This document shows, piece by piece, positions 2,712 to 12,125 of a DNA stretch of 64,000 bases. Location: positions 330,246 through 394,245 of the forward strand of contig NW_005434621.1 of assembly GCF_000315625.1 (NCBI RefSeq). Direction: 5' to 3'. The stretch is from Guillardia theta CCMP2712 (lineage: Eukaryota; Protista; Cryptophyta). The position numbers were made by a program, and so were the translations under genes. Positions within the stretch are counted from its first letter, which is position 1. Every line of letters begins with the position of its first letter. The notes beneath the pieces are model-generated. The model was given only the letters and a program-made list of their open reading frames with translations. It did not search any database and was not told the DNA's origin.

Positions 2712-3957
2712 GGTGACAAAACGTGTTCTCCCTATCACCTCACCCTCGTCTCCTCTCCTCAGGCTCCTCTCCTCTCCTCTCTTCTCCTATCGTCTCGTCT
2801 CGTCTCCTCTCCTCTCCTCTCCTCTCCTCTCCTCTCCTCTCCTCCGTCACATCCAGTAGCCCCTGAGGCTCCGACAGTCCCCTGAGCGCATAGCCAGCAT
2901 CTCCGTCACTTCATCCATCAAAAGGTGTTAACGGGAGAGGTAACTGCTAATAACGGATATAACGGTCAAGCACAGCCTGTGAGTAAAGAAGCCTGTGAGC
3001 ACTGAGAGACTCCTAAGAAGTTCACAGGGCCTTTACTCAAAGTACTGACTCCCGGGCCCGGAGCCTCGGAGTCCGAGTGCCGTGACGACGGCGGCGGACG
3101 GCCCAAGTTTGTCTAACCAGGCTCCGACCGCTGCAACTTTGTTGTGCCCGATCTGCCAGGTTTCTCGCCGTGAGTTTTCCTCGTACTGATCAAGTTTAAC
3201 CTGGTTTACAGTACGAGTCGAGGACTGAGGCTTGACCCTGACCGTCCGCTGTCCGGCGCACAGGCCAGCGAGAACCACACAGTAACTGGAGTGACTGCTG
3301 TCGAGGCTGCCGCAGTGCCACGGTGGGCAGCCTTGCGATCCGGCGGGCCCGGTGAAGCCTCCGGCTGAGCGACGTCATTGCGACCGTACCGTCCGGTGAC
3401 TGATGAGTCAGCCTATCGACTCTTTAAAACTTGAGTAATCGAGTGACTGTCACGATGAATTTATTGCCGCCACGCCGTTACAAGACACTATTCGGAACTC
3501 GGGGAATTCGGTCACTAAAATAAAATAAAAGGTACTGAGGTTTTGATAGTACCAGCCATTTCGGATAAAACATTATTCGGAGCTCCGTATAAAACTATGT
3601 TTTATATCGGATGACCGGAAATATGGTGTCGGAGCCCGCCTCAGTCATGGATGCACAAATATTCAGAATACATGTCGACAGTTTCAAAATCACAGAGAAA
3701 GAATTTCAGCATCATTCAAATTCCAGATTCGGTACCGAGTCACGAAGCGGTCACGAAGATGAAAAACTCGGCCTTGGGCTACAAGATATGCAGCAAGGGT
3801 CGTTAGGGAGACAGGGGGTACTTCGAGGTCAGAAGTGGGGATCACAAAAAAGGGGGTGGGTAGCGCTCACTTTACTCAGGGGAATGTTGAGAAGGCTTTT
3901 GGACACGGGGTGGGTACTGAGAACGAGGCATGAGATGCAGCGACTGTGTTGAACAGA

Positions 3958-4022
3958 GCATGGAGATCTAGATCAACGTCGAGATCACCATGCAGATCTA
4001 GATCACCGTCGAGATCAGCATG
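3958..4022. repeat. Two-copy ~30 bp tandem repeat upstream of the TIR/RSH gene
   Basis: catggagatctagatcaacgtcgagatcac / catgcagatctagatcaccgtcgagatcag. Confidence 0.85.
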
Positions 4023-4131
4023 TCATCAACATCTTCCTTGTTGCTGGTCGATCACTGCCTCCTCTGAGAGCCGACGATGGGGCAACTCTTCGAATGATGC
4101 CAAACGTGCAGGAAAGCAGAAGTTGTTGCTG

Positions 4132-6939
4132 ATGTTCTCAATAGGGAAGATGCATATCTTTGTAACGAGATTGCATCCATCACAACAAAACGAAGTTTCC
4201 GGCGATGTTGTACAGGAAGCTGATCCGTTTCCTGAGCTCCTACATCACAGCATCCACCAAATCCAATCGTCCGAGTCCAAGAGTGTTTTCAAGATCTACC
4301 CCGAGGCAACTTATCTTGACATGGACTGCGTGCCTGGCTCCTTTGCGGGAGAGTCGAGAGTATCCAAAGCAAAGTACTTGAGGAACAGCTCCATCTTTGT
4401 GCCCATTATTACATGGGGAAGGGATCACAGCGTTCTGAACGAGCTTGCACGAATCAACGAGGAGAGCGATGTAGAGAGTGACTTCGTGGTGTACGCGTTG
4501 GTAGCCATCTACTTGCTGCATAACAGCGTTGGCAGACTGAAGACGGTGTTCTCGATCCTGCAAGATGAGTCAGGGGGGCAATGCTCGATGATGGACGCGT
4601 GCCGCCAGTTGAGCAAGAAGCCTTCTCTGCTAAGTTGCGAGCGGGCGTGCTCACTGCTGCAGCAGGGAGGAGTTCGCAAGGAAAGGGAGAGGATCCTCGA
4701 ATTTCTTCTCAAGATCTCTGTGCAAGATGCGGTGTTGCTCCTCCTTCCAGCGGGATGGTGCGAGGAGGCACCGATGGTGGGGGGGAACAAGGGGACGTGT
4801 GCCATGTACGTGATGCCGGACGGGGAGGTGGAGAAGGGTGCCGTCGAGGCTGCAGAGCTGATTACAGACTGTCTTGTAAGCATCGTGAACAAGCACATCG
4901 AGCGGAAGCTGTGGGAGTTCTCCAACCACAACCCCCGAGGGATCGAAGTCCTGCAGGTGCTGCGGGAGCTGGGAGTCCACGAACAGTTCAATGAGTACTT
5001 TGCGCTGCGAGGCATCGAGTCTTTTGAGAGGCTGTCGAGCCTGGGGCACAATGTTTCCTTGAAGAAGGAGTGCAACGTGGTGTTCAGATCCTGCGACGAG
5101 GTTGTCACAGTGATGTCTCGGCACGATGAGGATTCGATCAAAACGCTGCAGATGCTTGCCTCCGAGCACAAGAGGGACAAGCGATTTCGACCCTTGAACG
5201 AGCGGCTCAGGCAGTACAGAGATACGGACGTGAACGGAGTGCTGGCTCTCCGCACCAGCAACTCACTCGAGACAGCCTTGGTGAAACTTCCTGCGAGAGT
5301 CTGCATTACTTTCCTGAGCACAGTGTACCTGGTGTTTGGTATCAAACAGCTTATGTCAGTGTGGACAGAAAGCATTTGGCTACCGGAAGCAAACTCGACG
5401 ACGCCTGTAGAGCCTCGAACTGTGAAGATATCGGTGATAGCAGACCCAATCATCAGCTTCTACTGGAGCTTCCTCTTTCTCTCGGGCATAGTCATCGGGA
5501 TTGTCAACACTCCACTGCGGGCCAAGTGGCTCCTTCTCTTTACAGGGCACCTGGTGATTGTTGGGAATTTGTTCTGCGCCCTGTCGGATTTCGTGCAATG
5601 CTCCACTCAGGGGACGGGGATAGGATCGTATTGTAGCGGGACTTCGCACATAGTGACTGTGATCTTCGTTGCGTTCGCAATGTACCTTGCGCATTTTGTT
5701 CAGCACTACTTCTGGATAGCAGCTTTCTTCCTCCAAGGCGCTTTCTGTCTCTTTTCATTTGTCGACATTGAAGGATGGTTCAGGATGTTATTCCTCGCTC
5801 TCGGGTTGGGATGCTTCGTCGTTGCCTTCATCATAGTCCTCCAGTTTCGCAAGCAGTACAGGAAGACTTTCATGGAGCTGACGGCGGCTATGAAAAGCTT
5901 CGATGAGAGCTGGGAGACGGTGAGGGAACAAAATACACAGGCAATAGAAGAAATCAACCAGCGAGTCCGATCCATATCTCAAGAGCTGAACGAGGTGATC
6001 AAAGGGGGCACCAAGACTTGGACTCTATACCTGAGTGTGATGCTGGGCATGCGGAGATCGCGATACTCGAGTCGCAACGATAAAATCCGGCAGGAGAGCA
6101 GCGACTTCGAGCGACTGTTCCTGCAGGCGCAGGAGATCAGTGCTCAGTTCCAGCTGTGGGTGTCTAGTTGGAATCAGGTGGGCAGAGTCGAGCACGGGAA
6201 CGTCAAGTCCTGCTCGCGAGCGATGCAGAAGACCGTCAGGTCGTACCAGCGGGACCCCTCCTGCTTGACCGACCTCGTGAGGTGCACGGTAGTAGTGCAG
6301 TCCATCGATGAAGTTCTTGCGTGGGTGACTTTCCTGCGCGAACAATCTGTGGTTGGCTTCGAGGTGAACGGTAGGGACAAGCCTGGGTCGTCGCGGGTGA
6401 CGTCAGAGGACATAGAGGTGGGCAGAGGAGGAGGAGGTACGGAGGGAGTGACGGAGAAGGCAGGCGGGGAGGGACGCAATGAGAGGAGACATCTTCATGA
6501 GCATCACGAGCATTAAGAATCGGTAAGGAGGGGAGGGAGAGTGAGGCAAACGCGTTGCACCTTACACACTCCTGTTAGGTACGATCCCTCGTACAAGGCG
6601 AGCATCAGTGGAGGATACAGAGACCTCTGCGTCTGTGTGGAGGTAGGAGGAGCAGGGCTGGGTACACGAGAGCTGACGCGATGGGGGCTGAAGGTGGGAT
6701 GGACGCGAGACGAGATGAATCAAACTTGTAGCCTCGTGCCAGTGAGGGAGTGGGGGCAGACGGCAGGGCTTCGGAAGCACATCTGTGAGATCCAGGTGGG
6801 AGAGGAGCTCGGGACGGTCCTCGGAGGTCAGGGGAGTTACTGACGCCGTCATTGGCAGGTGCTGCTGGAGGAGATGCACGCTATCAAGAAGCTCCTGCAC
6901 AAGGAGTACGTGAACTTCCGCAACACCCTATGCCAGTAG
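4132..6939 (+). CDS. Multi-pass membrane protein: TIR-like + SAM-like + ~6-7 TM helices + C-terminal RelA/SpoT-like nucleotidyltransferase
   Basis: Long first exon (ORF 3946-6516; start probably 4132 or 4150). Intron 6418-6463 and three further short introns restore ...FMSITSIKNR/YDPSYKASISGGYRDLCVCVE/VGW...HICEIQ/VLLEEMHAIKKLLHKEYVNFRNTLCQ* (TAG 6937-6939). RSH-synthetase-like motifs: GNVKSCSRAMQK, DLVRC, GGYRDL, EIQ. Confidence 0.75.
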
Positions 6940-7172
6940 AGATGCCGCCGGGATGTCGCCGTTGTGTACTATGATGTGCCATACGATCAGTTAGTGTAGT
7001 TAGTATTCTTTTCCTCTTCTGTACAGATCTGATTAAAATCATGATAGTCATTCCCAGTAGTGGTCCTCTAAATATTAATTCCGTGATACTAATAATGATT
7101 TACCCACCCCACAATAAGTTTTCGAAAAATAATTAGCGACCCTAAAGAGTATTGACCCGGCGGCTGGGCGAC

Positions 7173-10077
7173 ATGGCAGACGCTGGATGGTGGATCGGGG
7201 CGCTCGTGGCGGCAGCATGCGGGATGGCAGCGATGTGGGGGATGAGGAGAAGCAGAGGAGGTGAGGATGGGATGAGCCTGCGACATCGACCTCTGCTCAG
7301 TCAGCTAGGGGAGGAGGGGATGGGGAGGGAAAGTTGACTTTGGCCCTTGTCCAGGGGAACGTGGAAAGCAGCCGTCGGGGAGCAAGAAGGTTGCGTTTGT
7401 GCATCCGGATCTTGGGATAGGAGGAGCTGAACGGCTGGTATGATCATGATTCTGGTGTTGTCTTGTCCAGTCAAGAGTAGGATGGGTGATGTGGAAGCGA
7501 CCGTGGGGGTTCTGAGAAGAAAGTCCTGAAAATGATTGAGCATTGTGAATGAGAGGAGTAGGAGGGTGAGAGGTAGAAGAGGAGGGGAAGTTGAGGTAGG
7601 GTTGCAGGTGGTCGATGCTGCTGTTGGTTTGCAAAACAAGGGCCACAGTGTCGTGATGTACACCTCACATCACGACAAGAACCACTGCTTCCAAGAAACA
7701 AGGGATGGCACGTTGAACGTGGAGGTAGCCGTGTCGAAGATTCGCTGTTTCCTCTTGTCACCTTCATCAGGTGTTTGGGGACTTTCTCCCTCGGCACCTC
7801 CTCGGAAGGTTTCACATCCTGTTTGCAACGCTCCGAGGGATTTATCTAGCCATCGTGAGAGATTGCTTGTCCACAGGACCATAGAGAAAAACATTGCGTT
7901 TGTCTCTTATGCAGATTCCTTGCAGGTCATCCTGCTGACACAATCGCACTATGATGTGATCATCGTCGATCAGCTCTCGGTTCTTGTGACTTCCGGTGGT
8001 TGTTCGAGGGATCTGACAAATGTACTCATCCAGGTTCCCGTACCCATCCTCCTCGCCACAGGATCGAAGATCGTCTTCTACTGCCATTTCCCGGACCTGA
8101 AGCTCTCTGGGCGGTGAGCTTGAGGGTGTGGGCGACGGAGAGGAGCTGGTTGAAACGAGGGCAGGCGGAGTTTGATGAAATCTCTATACCGCCTGCCTTT
8201 CGACTGGCTCGAGGAGTTCACTACGTTGCTCGCTCACAGGGTATCCTACCTGATCGCACTCTTGTTGTGCATACCGACATGCACGTGTTTGCAGATCCTG
8301 GTCAACAGCAAGTACACTGCCCAGGTCTTCCACGAGACATTTGCAAGCGCGAAGATCTCGCCAGAGGTCGAGATGGAGAGCTGGGGCTCGAGGTTGACGT
8401 TGAATGTAGGTGCTCTACCCCAGCATCAATCTCAAGTCGTACGAGAGGAACGAGAGCGGGACGTCGACGAGATCGGAGGAGGCGGGGACGTTGCTCAAGA
8501 CTCTGCGCGACTTCACGTACGCTGCTGCTGTTCCTCCTCCTCCTCCTCCTCCTCCTCCTCCTCCTCCTCCTCCTCCTCCTCCTCCTCCTCCTCCTCCAAG
8601 CAGAGTTTTCGTTCCTTGGCGACTGAGACGACTGAAGGTGTTTCGTGTCTATCAACCGTTTCGAGCGCAAGAAGAACATCGATCTGGCAGTAAAGGCTTT
8701 TGGTACTTCTTGTCACCTTGCCAGCCTGCGTTGAGGGCATGGCTGCTGGCAGCTCGCCTGAAGCGAGATCAGCCCAAGGATGAGTTCGGGAAGTTGAGAC
8801 TAATCATTGCCGGGGGGTACGACCCGAGAGTCACGGAGAATGTAAGAGATTCGTCGTCTCTCCCATCGCCGCACCGCTCACCATGACGGCGCAGGTCGAG
8901 TACAAGCGGGAGCTAGAGGGGCTGAGCAAGTCCCTTGCTGTTTCAGATCAAGTCTGTCGAATTATCCTCTCTCATCCTTTCCTATCTCCCCCCCCCCTCC
9001 TCCTCCTCCCCCTCCTCTCCTGCTCTCTCCGTCCTCTCCTACGACTCTCCTCTCCTGCCTCGCTGCCTTGCCGTCTCCATCCCTCCTCCTCGTTTCTCTA
9101 GATGCGAATGACATGTTCTCCAGATCATTTTCAAAGCAAGCTTCAGCGACGAGGAGCGATCCCTCATGCTGAGGTCTCTCTGTCCTTGTCCCCCCTCCTC
9201 CCCTCCTCCCCTCTCCCCTTTCCTACCTCTCTCCCCTCTCCCCTCTCCTCCTCCTTCCCTCTCATCTCCCACCTGCAGCCATTGCTTCGCAGTGATCTAC
9301 ACGCCTTCCAACGAGCATTTCGGCATTGTGCGCTTCAGACACGCCATGGGAAGCGTCTGATGAATGTCGGCAGGTTCCGATAGAAGCCATGTACAGCCAG
9401 CGTCCTGTCCTCGCATGCAACAGCGGAGGACCAACTGAGAGCGTTCTACACGAAGTCAGCCTCCTCCTCTCTCGCCCCTCCTCTCTCTCCTTGTCCTCTC
9501 CGTCCTCGTCCTCGTCCTCACTTTCCTCCCTATTCTCGTCCTTTTACCTAGTATTCCTTCCTTTCCGCTCCTCCTTTCTCGCTCCTCCTTCCTCGTCCTG
9601 CTCCTCCATCCCTCATTTAAATTTTCTGCCTCTTGACTCATTTTGAGCAGAAGACGGGGCTTCTGTGCGAGGCCACAGAAGAAGATTTTGCCTCGGGGAT
9701 GAACAGAATGTTGAAGGACAGGAGCTGGGCAAGAGAAATGGGGGCGAATGGAAGGTGAAGACCTCAGCTTGCTGTTGTTTCGATGATGATGACGACGACG
9801 ACGATGATTACAATGATGATGATGATTATGATGATGATGATGATGACGACGACGACGATGATGATGATGATTACAATGATGATGATGATGATGACAACCA
9901 TGATTGGATGATGATGGTGCGACAATGATGGTGATGATGAATGATATTGAGATTGAGATTATGATTGTTGTGATTATTACGACGATGATGGGCTTTGTTG
10001 ACAGGAAAAGGGTACAGGAGAATTTCTCTTTGGATGCCTTCTCCCAAAGGCTACACGAAATCATAAGATCTTTATGA
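7173..10077 (+). CDS. ALG2: Alpha-1,3/1,6-mannosyltransferase (GT4), multi-exon
   Basis: Exon motifs VAFVHPDLGIGGAERL, MYTSHHDKNHCFQET, IVFYCHFPD, YRLPFDWLEE, SINRFERKKNIDLA, AGGYDPRVTEN, YTPSNEHFGIV, PIEAM...NSGGPTESV; ends ENFSLDAFSQRLHEIIRSL* at 10077. Confidence 0.92.
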
Positions 10078-10960: not shown

Positions 10961-12125
10961 ATGGCAGACACAACAAGCGCAGGGCAGCTCGCATTGGGGG
11001 ACTGGGCAATGGTGTGGATATATTTCATCCTCTGCATGGGGATAGGGCTGGGTATAGCGTACAAGAACCGGAACAAGGGGGGAGGAGCGACAGGACCCAA
11101 ACTCGTCTCGCAGTCCAGCCAGTGCTCGTCCGATGACGGGCATGCAGAGAGGTACTTCTTGGCGGGAAGGGAAGCAGCGTTCTGGGCTGTCGGCGCGTCA
11201 CTCTTCGCTTCCAACATCGGATCCGAACATTTCATCGGCCTCGCAGGGAGCGGAGCCAAGGTCGGCATGTGCGTCTCCTGGGGAGAGTGGCTGTCGCCCT
11301 TCGCCATCCTCCTCCTAGGCTGGGTCTTCGTCCCCCTCTACATCGGCTCTGGCGTCTTCACCATGCCGGAGTTCCTCGAGCGGCGGTACTCGCGCGGGCT
11401 GCGTACCTACTACGCGTGCCTCCTCCTCTTCCTCTACGTACTCACCAAGGTCAGCGTCGCCCTCTACGCTGGAGCAGTCGTGCTGCAGCAGACGGTCGGG
11501 TGGGACCTGTGGAGCGGGGCCGTGAGCCTGGTGGTGGGGACGGGAATCTACACGGCGACCGGGGGCATGGCGGCAGTGATCTACACTGAAGTGATCCAGA
11601 CCGTGGTCCTGATCGCAGGCGGCCTCGTCCTCCTCTTCATCGCCATGCAGAGGGTCGGAGGGTTCGACATGATGTGGCAGAAGGTGTGGGAAAAGTGGGG
11701 TGGAGGATGACAAGGAGGGAGGAATGAAGGGGCAGGAGGAGGGGGAGGAGGAGGAGGAGGAAGGGAAGGGGACGTATTCTGGGAGGAGGAGGAGAACGAT
11801 AATGATTCGATGATACGATGATGATATGATGTTCGTGATGACGATGGTGTTTGTGTTTGTGTTGGTAAGAAGAAGGAGGAGGAGGAGGAAGCGGAGAGGG
11901 AAGAGGAGGAGGAGCAGAAGGGAGGAGGAAGAGGAGGAGGAGGAGGAGGAGGAGGAGGAGGAGGAAGATTGAACATTAACGAACCTCAAAGGTCCCAGGA
12001 GAGCACGCACATTTGTTTCAACCACCTTCTCATGAAGACTTCCCATGGACTGGAGTTTTCTTCGGAATGCCTTTCACCTCCATCTGGTAGCCCCTGCATC
12101 CCGACATTACTTCTACCCCAGCCCT

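Follow-up and report, generated by a model that had tools for sequence, protein, structure and literature searches.

A predicted TIR-fold, six-transmembrane protein with a RelA/SpoT-like synthetase domain represents a large unannotated family in the cryptophyte Guillardia theta

Introduction

RelA/SpoT homologue (RSH) enzymes are regarded as stress-signalling enzymes of bacteria and plastids or as bacterial toxins. Analysis of a 64,000-nucleotide stretch of the genome of Guillardia theta CCMP2712 (contig C53:330246-394245, hereafter the window) revealed a gene at positions 4132-6939 of the forward strand, identified by protein search as GUITHDRAFT_111645. Its product combines an N-terminal domain with a predicted TIR fold, six predicted transmembrane (TM) helices and a C-terminal domain that belongs, as a divergent member, to the RSH synthetase superfamily and has an active site predicted to be intact. 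Known domain types are thus brought together in a new eukaryotic membrane architecture, and the large algal family that carries the C-terminal domain is missed by standard annotation (Pfam). The public record (P0001) describes an 870-residue 'hypothetical protein' with no Pfam domain, and its closest relatives in protein searches belong to the cryptophyte Hanusia phi.

The best sequence match of the protein is Tas1 (Apk1), a (p)ppApp-synthetase toxin of the Pseudomonas aeruginosa type VI secretion system (6OX6). Tas1 is a soluble bacterial protein with a PAAR delivery fusion and a paired immunity protein; its products are pApp, ppApp and pppApp, and its lethality comes from depletion of the ATP pool (PMC7229694). 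Among its exported relatives are makers of (p)ppApp, of (p)ppGpp and of both (PMC12691689). The best structural matches are the small alarmone synthetases (SAS) SAS1/RelQ and SAS2/RelP (5DED, 6FGK, 6EWZ and 2BE3), soluble bacterial (p)ppGpp makers of about 200 residues with the motifs R.K...S...K and D..G.R. The fused toxSAS proteins (CapRel; FaRel2, PhRel) are bacterial and soluble, have a pseudo-ZFD sensor and a tRNA target, and those of the CapRel type serve antiviral defence (PMC9712102, PMC11782079). Among eukaryotes, fungal NLRs have been listed that carry RelA_SpoT as their N-terminal effector domain (bioRxiv 10.1101/2022.03.16.484565); they are presumed to be immune proteins and are soluble and detected by Pfam, with the domain placed N-terminal to NACHT/NB-ARC and repeats. 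The plastid RSH1-4 of plants and algae, of the same superfamily, have HD hydrolase, synthetase and regulatory domains and are plastid-targeted. Finally, SARM1/TIR-1 and the plant and bacterial TIR effectors are relevant to the front part of the protein; in SARM1 the order is SAM-SAM-TIR, the last being an NADase.

Compared with Tas1, GUITHDRAFT_111645 is eukaryotic and intron-split, has six TM helices, a TIR-fold domain in front and two insertions in the enzyme domain, and shows no evident immunity partner. It differs from the SAS in having motifs of the Tas1 form and in carrying the domain as the C-terminal module of a membrane protein. Like the fused toxSAS, it joins an RSH-fold domain to a putative regulatory or sensor part in one chain, but no sequence similarity to them is detectable (Foldseek E > 0.1). 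Unlike the fungal NLRs, with which it shares a eukaryotic setting and an RSH-like effector domain, it has no NTPase domain and instead possesses a membrane anchor and a TIR-fold partner. With SARM1 and the TIR effectors it shares the predicted TIR fold; a Glu that may be equivalent by topology and an adjacent, possibly SAM-like stretch would be further likenesses. In GUITHDRAFT_111645, however, the TIR fold precedes this stretch, sequence comparison matches neither TIR nor SAM, conservation of the Glu does not extend to the whole family, and the whole is fused to TM helices and a second enzyme domain. A preceding interpretation of the same DNA (the sequence-only reading) knew of no described system with such an architecture, and the literature searched here likewise yielded no description of a TIR-fold/six-TM/RSH protein or of a cryptophyte expansion of RSH-like domains. 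As far as it was read, a 2025 survey of Tas1 homologues deals with bacterial sequences only and does not contain the word 'eukaryote'.

The C-terminal RSH-fold domain

The domain on which the assignment to the RSH superfamily is based is the following (its limits and key residues are numbered on the 863-residue product of the revised gene model).

6187..6936, + strand: RSH (RelA/SpoT-synthetase) fold domain, residues 686-863, interrupted by four introns

In a single-sequence phmmer search the isolated domain had a sole match among PDB sequences, Tas1 (E 1.5e-3), and the alignment covers GRVEHGNVKSCSRAMQKTVRSYQRDPSCLTDLVRCTVVV, 43 residues that are about 50% identical. A profile built from nine paralogous RSH-like domains (A3) retrieved Tas1 (9.7e-5), Bacillus subtilis SAS2/YwaC (6FGK, 3.6e-4) and the Streptococcus pneumoniae protein 2BE3 (0.0095). 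The YwaC alignment takes in almost the entire domain (10-133 of the 137 profile positions), with KS...K, the catalytic Asp, GYR including the G-loop Tyr, EIQ and H..Y in register. The domain of GUITHDRAFT_111645 does not reach the gathering score of PF04607 (RelA_SpoT); a paralogous domain on contig C1 clears this cut-off (31.8 vs 27 bits), and the protein P0057 scores 18.4 bits.

The fold was examined with an AlphaFold2 (AF2) model of residues 630-870 (mean predicted local distance difference test score, pLDDT, 65). The top 45 PDB matches of this model in Foldseek are all RSH proteins, the best being SAS1 (E 2e-5, probability 1.00), followed by RelP, Tas1, RelSeq, SpoT and exported SAS. Structural comparison by VIA, in which noise typically gives Z of 7-8, placed SAS1 first (Z 11.8), with CapRel at 11.0, RelP at 10.8, exported SAS at 10.0 and Tas1, which has the highest identity among these matches (24%), at 9.5; the SAS alignments (Z 10.8-11.8) extend over 143-160 residues. 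Long RSHs reach Z 7-8.6, and other polymerase beta-type transferases (TdT, pol lambda) 7.1 at most. The RSH/pol-beta nucleotidyltransferase fold, whose absence would have spoken against the sequence-only reading, is therefore the one predicted by both comparisons.

The key residues are K692, R696, K700, D714, R717, K780-N781-R782, Y795, E835, Q837, H851 and Y854. Five of them (K692, K700, D714, Y795 and E835) line up with their SAS2/YwaC counterparts and are invariant in 14 paralogous domains whose identity to GUITHDRAFT_111645 is as low as 28%; R696, R717 and H833 are almost invariant in the same set. All residues by which RSH synthetases hold ATP-Mg and the acceptor base are retained. The resemblance to RelA/SpoT synthetase motifs noted earlier (K..SR..K, DLVR, GGYRDL, EIQ and H..Y) is borne out by this comparison, in which all these motifs are invariant or nearly so. 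Members of the subfamily are 66-74% identical in the RSH core but only 40-48% in the TIR-fold domain, the middle module, the TM part and the linker, which makes the enzyme domain the best-conserved portion of the protein; a 30-residue insert is poorly conserved (28%).

In detail, the motifs are of the Tas1 type, KS..RAMQK (with no leading Arg and with Arg at motif position 7) and DL.R, and the SAS forms R.K...S...K and D..G.R are absent. Common to Tas1 and GUITHDRAFT_111645 are thus KS..RAMQK, DL.R.T..V, the loss of the first Arg, the Arg at position 7 and the fold. An invariant KNR ahead of the G-loop and GGYRD within it are marks specific to the family. The likeness to Tas1 that bears on an adenine acceptor exists at the motif level only, over 43 residues, and the domain is filed under the RSH superfamily rather than as a Tas1 orthologue or a (p)ppApp synthetase.

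Algae have nuclear RSH genes for plastid (p)ppGpp, and such genes are present in G. theta, so that an ordinary stringent-response enzyme of the plant/algal plastid type had to be considered. In the genome (an 87-Mb assembly of 669 contigs, to which all genome searches refer) HD_4 hydrolase domains occur only in two genes of the canonical RSH type (contigs C47 and C24), where they accompany RelA_SpoT. The product of GUITHDRAFT_111645 has no HD domain and possesses six TM helices, neither it nor its transcript-derived Hanusia orthologue (P0003) has a signal or transit peptide, and it is closest to Tas1 and SAS, not to the long RSHs. The plastid identity was rejected as highly improbable, in agreement with the earlier suggestion of a non-plastid protein.

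The near-equal structural scores of CapRel and SAS1 bear on another alternative, a translation-blocking effector that would modify the CCA end of tRNA, since the tRNA-modifying toxSAS are themselves fused sensor-toxin immune proteins (PMC9712102, PMC11782079). Such an activity is considered unlikely, because the best sequence match, Tas1, makes (pp)pApp (PMC7229694) and because CapRel and FaRel2 were recovered by Foldseek only at E > 0.1.

The N-terminal TIR-fold domain

4147..4896, + strand: TIR-fold domain, approximately residues 6-255, with E104 in a short helix after strand C in the AF2 model

The N-terminal part was modelled by AF2 (residues 1-393) from an alignment of 16 paralogues, with a mean pLDDT of 66; the score is about 88 over residues 80-200 and low over residues 1-30 and 54-77, which affects strands A and B. 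The best PDB match in Foldseek is the TIR domain of flax L6 (E 0.014, probability 0.97); flavodoxin-like proteins and the TIR of RPS4/RRS1 come next. In the VIA comparison with 48,161 chains, which is independent of Foldseek, TIR domains take nearly all of the first 11 ranks, including 4c6t_B, an RPS4/RRS1 TIR entry (Z 10.7, 152/166 residues aligned), RPP1 (10.6), AtTIR (9.9), the CRISPR Cat1 TIR (9.8), the SARM1 TIR (9.7) and IL-1RAcPb (9.5). Lower scores went to nucleoside deoxyribosyltransferases, SEFIR domains and GTPases. Related flavodoxin-like folds reach Z 7-9 with this model. The TIR signal is accordingly moderate but coherent, and the domain is best described as a TIR fold by prediction rather than a demonstrated member of the TIR family. 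As to the TIR-like N-terminus of the sequence-only reading, whose lack would likewise have spoken against that reading, the predicted structure supports it, TIR domains being the best matches in both Foldseek and VIA, while sequence and profile methods find nothing. An Atlas search with this part gave no usable match, and the Atlas model of GUITHDRAFT_111645 is poor.

In the model, a strand at residues 88-95 (IFVPIITW) is followed by a helix at 101-105 (VLNEL, within SVLNELARI) that contains E104. If this strand corresponds to strand C, as the topology suggests, E104 would lie at the place of the catalytic Glu of NADase-type TIR domains, for which CRREFARA in the TIR_2 domains of the same genome provides a comparison. 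The previous statement that the catalytic Glu is missing referred to SDFVVYAL, too far downstream, and does not hold for the modelled topology. An NADase activity is therefore possible in GUITHDRAFT_111645; it is not expected to be a property of the whole family, because the Glu is present in only seven of the 16 paralogues.

Canonical TIR_2 domains form a separate, expanded family in this genome, with at least 17 matches on contigs C150, C149, C23, C92, C184, C221, C228, C33 and others (L059-L070). Most of them are near-identical to one another and are located at the start of open frames of 1,200-1,370 residues; the family carries the catalytic motif CRREF.

Helical module, membrane part and topology

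4897..5286, + strand: helical module, residues 256-385, in which residues 271-298 show a weak likeness to a SAM domain, limited to its first half
5287..5847, + strand: six TM helices predicted by hydropathy scan, residues 386-572
5848..6186, + strand: helical/coiled-coil linker, residues 573-685, from TM6 to the enzyme domain, with long helices in the model

The helical module is possibly a degenerate SAM domain. Alignment by hhalign to seven SAM_2 domains of the same genome matched residues 271-298 to SAM positions 7-33 over 27 columns, weakly (P 0.006, probability 6%). SAM_2 is the Pfam family matched by most paralogues at E<=10, although this amounts to two of 16 (best E 0.18), and SAM_KSR1 was matched in one more (E 0.16). 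The weak half-domain match falls exactly on the stretch that had been called SAM-like; the second half of the domain is not evident, the model showing short helices with low confidence over residues 305-331, and an Atlas search with the middle part returned no usable match and no support for SAM.

The hydropathy scan located hydrophobic segments at approximately residues 386-408, 437-459, 466-486, 503-523, 526-546 and 552-572, consistent with the six or seven helices expected previously. Clusters of Lys and Arg occur ahead of TM1, between TM2 and TM3 and beyond TM6. Because this distribution fits the positive-inside rule, both termini are probably on the cytosolic side, and the N-terminal portion of about 385 residues and the C-terminal portion of about 290 residues (linker and RSH-fold domain) are predicted to share one side of the membrane. 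An NST site is present in the loop joining TM1 and TM2, and a conserved motif with cysteines, QCS..G.GIG..C, in that joining TM3 and TM4.

Weak matches confined to TM6 and the linker, namely TMEM120, TMEM220, SLATT_6 (E 0.18) and PspC, are not significant. The SLATT_6 match lies at window positions 5839-6000 (residues 570-623), and residues 676-745 of the paralogue P0005 matched the PADLOC '2TM effector' profile with E 0.003. These are profiles of nucleotide-activated defence systems; the matches are not significant and may reflect composition only.

Gene structure and expression

The coding span of GUITHDRAFT_111645 runs from the start codon at 4132 to the end of the stop codon at 6939, precisely the limits given in the sequence-only reading. 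Most of it belongs to a single open frame of 856 codons (3946-6516), of which 4132 is the first ATG. The exons were derived by placing the public protein on the DNA and by comparison with the transcript-derived Hanusia phi orthologue P0003; the spliced coding sequence (4132-6417, 6464-6522, 6579-6642, 6694-6795 and 6859-6939) comprises 2,592 nucleotides, that is 863 residues and a stop codon, and its four introns all have GT..AG borders.

4132..6417, + strand: exon 1, residues 1-762, an open frame equal to P0001 residues 1-762, with a GT donor at 6418; it encodes the TIR-fold domain, the helical module, the six TM helices, the coiled-coil linker and, of the RSH-like domain, the first half
6418..6463, + strand: intron 1, 46 nucleotides, GT..AG, junction in agreement with P0003
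6464..6522, + strand: exon 2, AGRDAMRGDIFMSITSIKN and the first two bases of the R782 codon
6523..6578, + strand: intron 2, 56 nucleotides, GT..AG
6579..6642, + strand: exon 3, with the G-loop SGGYRDL; 6613-6649 are matched by a paralogue DNA contig
6643..6693, + strand: intron 3, 51 nucleotides, GT..AG
6694..6795, + strand: exon 4, whose last codons read HICEIQ and include the catalytic Glu, E835; three RNA reads and paralogue models back the donor at 6796
6796..6858, + strand: intron 4, 63 nucleotides, GT..AG; the donor of the public model is 21 nucleotides downstream
6859..6939, + strand: exon 5, VLLEEMHAIKKLLHKEYVNFRNTLCQ and the stop codon; it has the best RNA-read coverage, in part paralogue-derived

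The peptides cited in the sequence-only reading all lie within the open frame 4132-6516, with the later motifs in the small downstream exons, so that its description of a spliced domain was correct. Junctions 1-3 match the Hanusia orthologue. At the last junction three RNA reads connect EIQ directly to VLLEEM, and the gene models of four paralogues have the same junction. On this evidence the donor of intron 4 in the public model P0001 is placed 21 nucleotides too far downstream, which creates a spurious seven-residue insert, GEELGTV. The insert falls within the helix that follows the catalytic EIQ. A single intron between GFEVNG and YDPSYK is incompatible with the phases, and the JGI model and the Hanusia transcript reveal an additional 59-nucleotide exon.

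The paralogues carry 20-45 more residues ahead of the first strand, and GUITHDRAFT_111645 may for this reason have a further upstream exon. Most RNA reads on the last exon are only 90-95% identical to this copy and come from paralogues. The gene is transcribed, and so is the family, since P0003 is a full-length transcript and the Guillardia paralogue P0014 was likewise found in a transcriptome.

An expanded family in Guillardia and other cryptophytes

Searches of the genome with the N-terminal 389 residues gave 17 matches, representing about 15 genes; these include three tandem copies on contig C37 and inverted pairs on C117 and C4. The enzyme domain has at least 46 matches. The earlier reading had proposed a count of paralogues in cryptophytes, a guess at the source that is correct, and both numbers are far above chance.

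A larger sister subfamily, with open frames of 1,000-1,100 residues, has two RSH-like domains flanking the TM cluster, which includes an extracytosolic loop of about 190 residues with N-X-S/T sites and cysteines. Some of its proteins bear the automatic UniProt name 'RelA/SpoT domain-containing protein'. Loci of this subfamily are L044:1094-4378 (+), L045:1132-4491 (+) and L040:1457-4735 (-), and its database relatives (P0015-P0020) have up to 1,455 residues. The first RSH-like domain ends with ELRLAVM and not with ELQL...GHKRY. On contig C1, at 840500-847000 (-), there are two near-identical copies about 6.4 kb apart (L042, L005/L006); a frame of at least 998 codons without a stop contains an RSH-like domain (the one that scores 31.8 bits with Pfam RelA_SpoT), a TM region and a second RSH-like domain, and is either a single gene with two domains or the read-through of two genes.

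In a wider survey, an exhaustive profile search of 1.84 billion representative proteins retrieved 5,623 clusters at E<=1e-3, 1,929 at 1e-10 and 370 at 1e-30. Among the 20 top matches that were looked up, all named proteins are from cryptophytes (Guillardia, Hanusia, Rhodomonas and Hemiselmis) and the others are metagenomic. Of the members with at least 600 residues, nearly all have a TM cluster 200-350 residues upstream of the RSH-like domain. The front domains vary among family members, and the TIR-fold front part is restricted to the Guillardia/Hanusia subfamily and a few environmental contigs. The Atlas neighbours of the C-terminal domain, used as leads only, hint that diatoms and foraminifera also have similar domains that lack annotation; TPR and ankyrin fusions are among these neighbours. 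Pattern scans with confirmation by tblastn found no relatives in viruses, bacteria or archaea, a result that depends on the patterns chosen and is weak evidence.

This organisation could also be that of a physiological receptor-enzyme, in which the six-pass part would sense a cue from the environment or the membrane and drive the formation of a cytosolic nucleotide second messenger, with no involvement of immunity or toxicity. The protein may be likened to the receptor-type cyclases of protists: a membrane part joined to a cytosolic nucleotide-forming enzyme is the layout throughout the family, the loop of the sister subfamily, with its N-glycosylation sites and cysteines, looks receptor-like, and the catalytic residues are conserved. 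Dozens of fast-diverging tandem and inverted paralogues with differing front domains fit conflict genes better, however; the nearest characterised sequence relative, Tas1, is a toxin, no dedicated cytosolic hydrolase that would end the signal is evident, and we know of no eukaryotic cytosolic (p)ppNpp receptor. A purely physiological role is on balance doubtful.

Proposed function

In the preferred interpretation, to which a probability of roughly 55% is assigned, GUITHDRAFT_111645 would be a pyrophosphokinase that is anchored in the membrane, consumes ATP and serves in conflict or immunity. The C-terminal domain would move pyrophosphate from ATP onto the 3'-OH of an acceptor, for which the Tas1-like motifs make an adenine nucleotide the first guess. 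This would result in a (p)ppApp-like product and a drain of ATP; a guanine nucleotide or the CCA end of tRNA would be less likely.

TIR domains work through induced assembly. Since they do so, and since the enzyme is predicted to be tethered to the membrane by a coiled-coil on the same side as the TIR-fold module, it is proposed that the enzyme is inactive by default and is switched on when several copies come together, either through the six-TM bundle or through the TIR-fold/helical module. The TIR-fold domain of GUITHDRAFT_111645 might add NAD+ cleavage or might act as an assembly module only.

A role in conflict or immunity, either as virus defence or as an effector of cell death or growth arrest, is suggested by the large tandem and inverted family, by its fast evolution outside the enzyme core and by the varied front domains. 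The parallels with CapRel and with the fungal RelA_SpoT NLRs also favour such a role over housekeeping signalling, an argument that remains one of analogy.

Several observations weigh against this interpretation. The case for immunity is drawn solely from family dynamics and analogy; the genes flanking GUITHDRAFT_111645 in the window are unrelated, and the genome contains no extra SAH-type hydrolase as a potential antidote. Scans of the whole protein and its parts with Pfam, NCBIfam and PADLOC gave nothing significant, and Pfam had no match on P0001 or its C-terminal part even at E<=10. No TIR Pfam match was obtained for any of the 16 paralogues at E<=10, comparison by hhalign with eight TIR_2 domains of the same genome gave a probability of 0.6%, and the N-terminal profile had no match among PDB sequences. 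Where the paralogues lack the Glu at position 104, they have Asp, Gln, Leu, Thr, Ile or Lys. In the C-terminal domain the first Arg of the classical R.K...S...K is missing, as in Tas1, and two family-specific insertions, at approximately residues 741-770 and 805-830, interrupt the domain. The two structural models, with mean pLDDT of 65-66, reach medium confidence and were built from shallow, paralogue-only alignments, and the RNA coverage of the GUITHDRAFT_111645 copy is very low (a single raw RNA run).

The failure of Pfam to recognise either domain, the missing leading Arg of the ATP-binding motif, the two insertions and the unconserved TIR Glu could also point to a pseudoenzyme, whose RSH-like and TIR-like domains would be non-catalytic and would serve only as interaction or assembly modules of a membrane complex. 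The invariance of the catalytic Asp, Glu and Lys residues and of the base-stacking Tyr in paralogues down to 28% identity argues against loss of catalysis, and the missing Arg, together with the Arg at position 7, is common to the highly active Tas1. A mere scaffold is accordingly held to be improbable.

Neighbouring genes in the window

The next gene downstream (window 7167-7400 onward, + strand) is probably expressed, with an assembled-contig depth of about 50-118 in presumed RNA runs, far above that of GUITHDRAFT_111645, and has a verified 94-nucleotide GT..AG intron at 7259-7352; its product has no Pfam identification. A long trinucleotide repeat at 8560-8640, in or beside this gene, would read as poly-Leu, -Ser, -Pro or -Arg, depending on frame and strand. 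Further downstream, an unrelated housekeeping gene has an exon at 10961-11710 (+ strand) that encodes part of a sodium:solute symporter (Pfam SSF, E 8e-48).

Significance

G. theta possesses dozens of intron-containing nuclear genes for proteins in which a Tas1/SAS-like domain with a predicted intact active site is placed, probably, on the cytosolic face of a multi-pass protein. Because the family is invisible to Pfam, it is missed by surveys of RSH distribution. If the domain is active, (p)ppApp/(p)ppGpp-like chemistry or toxicity by ATP drain would become directly testable in a eukaryotic cytosol, and the family would add a new type of effector to the immune modules shared by bacteria and eukaryotes (TIR, STING, gasdermin and NLR).

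A more specific and decidedly tentative picture, with odds well below even, is that of a cryptophyte innate-immune or cell-death system of membrane receptor-enzymes that, once activated, would make (p)ppApp-type nucleotides in the cytosol and drain ATP in the manner of Tas1, coupled in this subfamily to a possibly NAD+-cleaving TIR-fold domain. If true, effector chemistry of the alarmone type would for the first time be known from beyond bacteria and plastids, and the system would be a parallel to the immunity by metabolic collapse that is mediated by SARM1 and TIR proteins.

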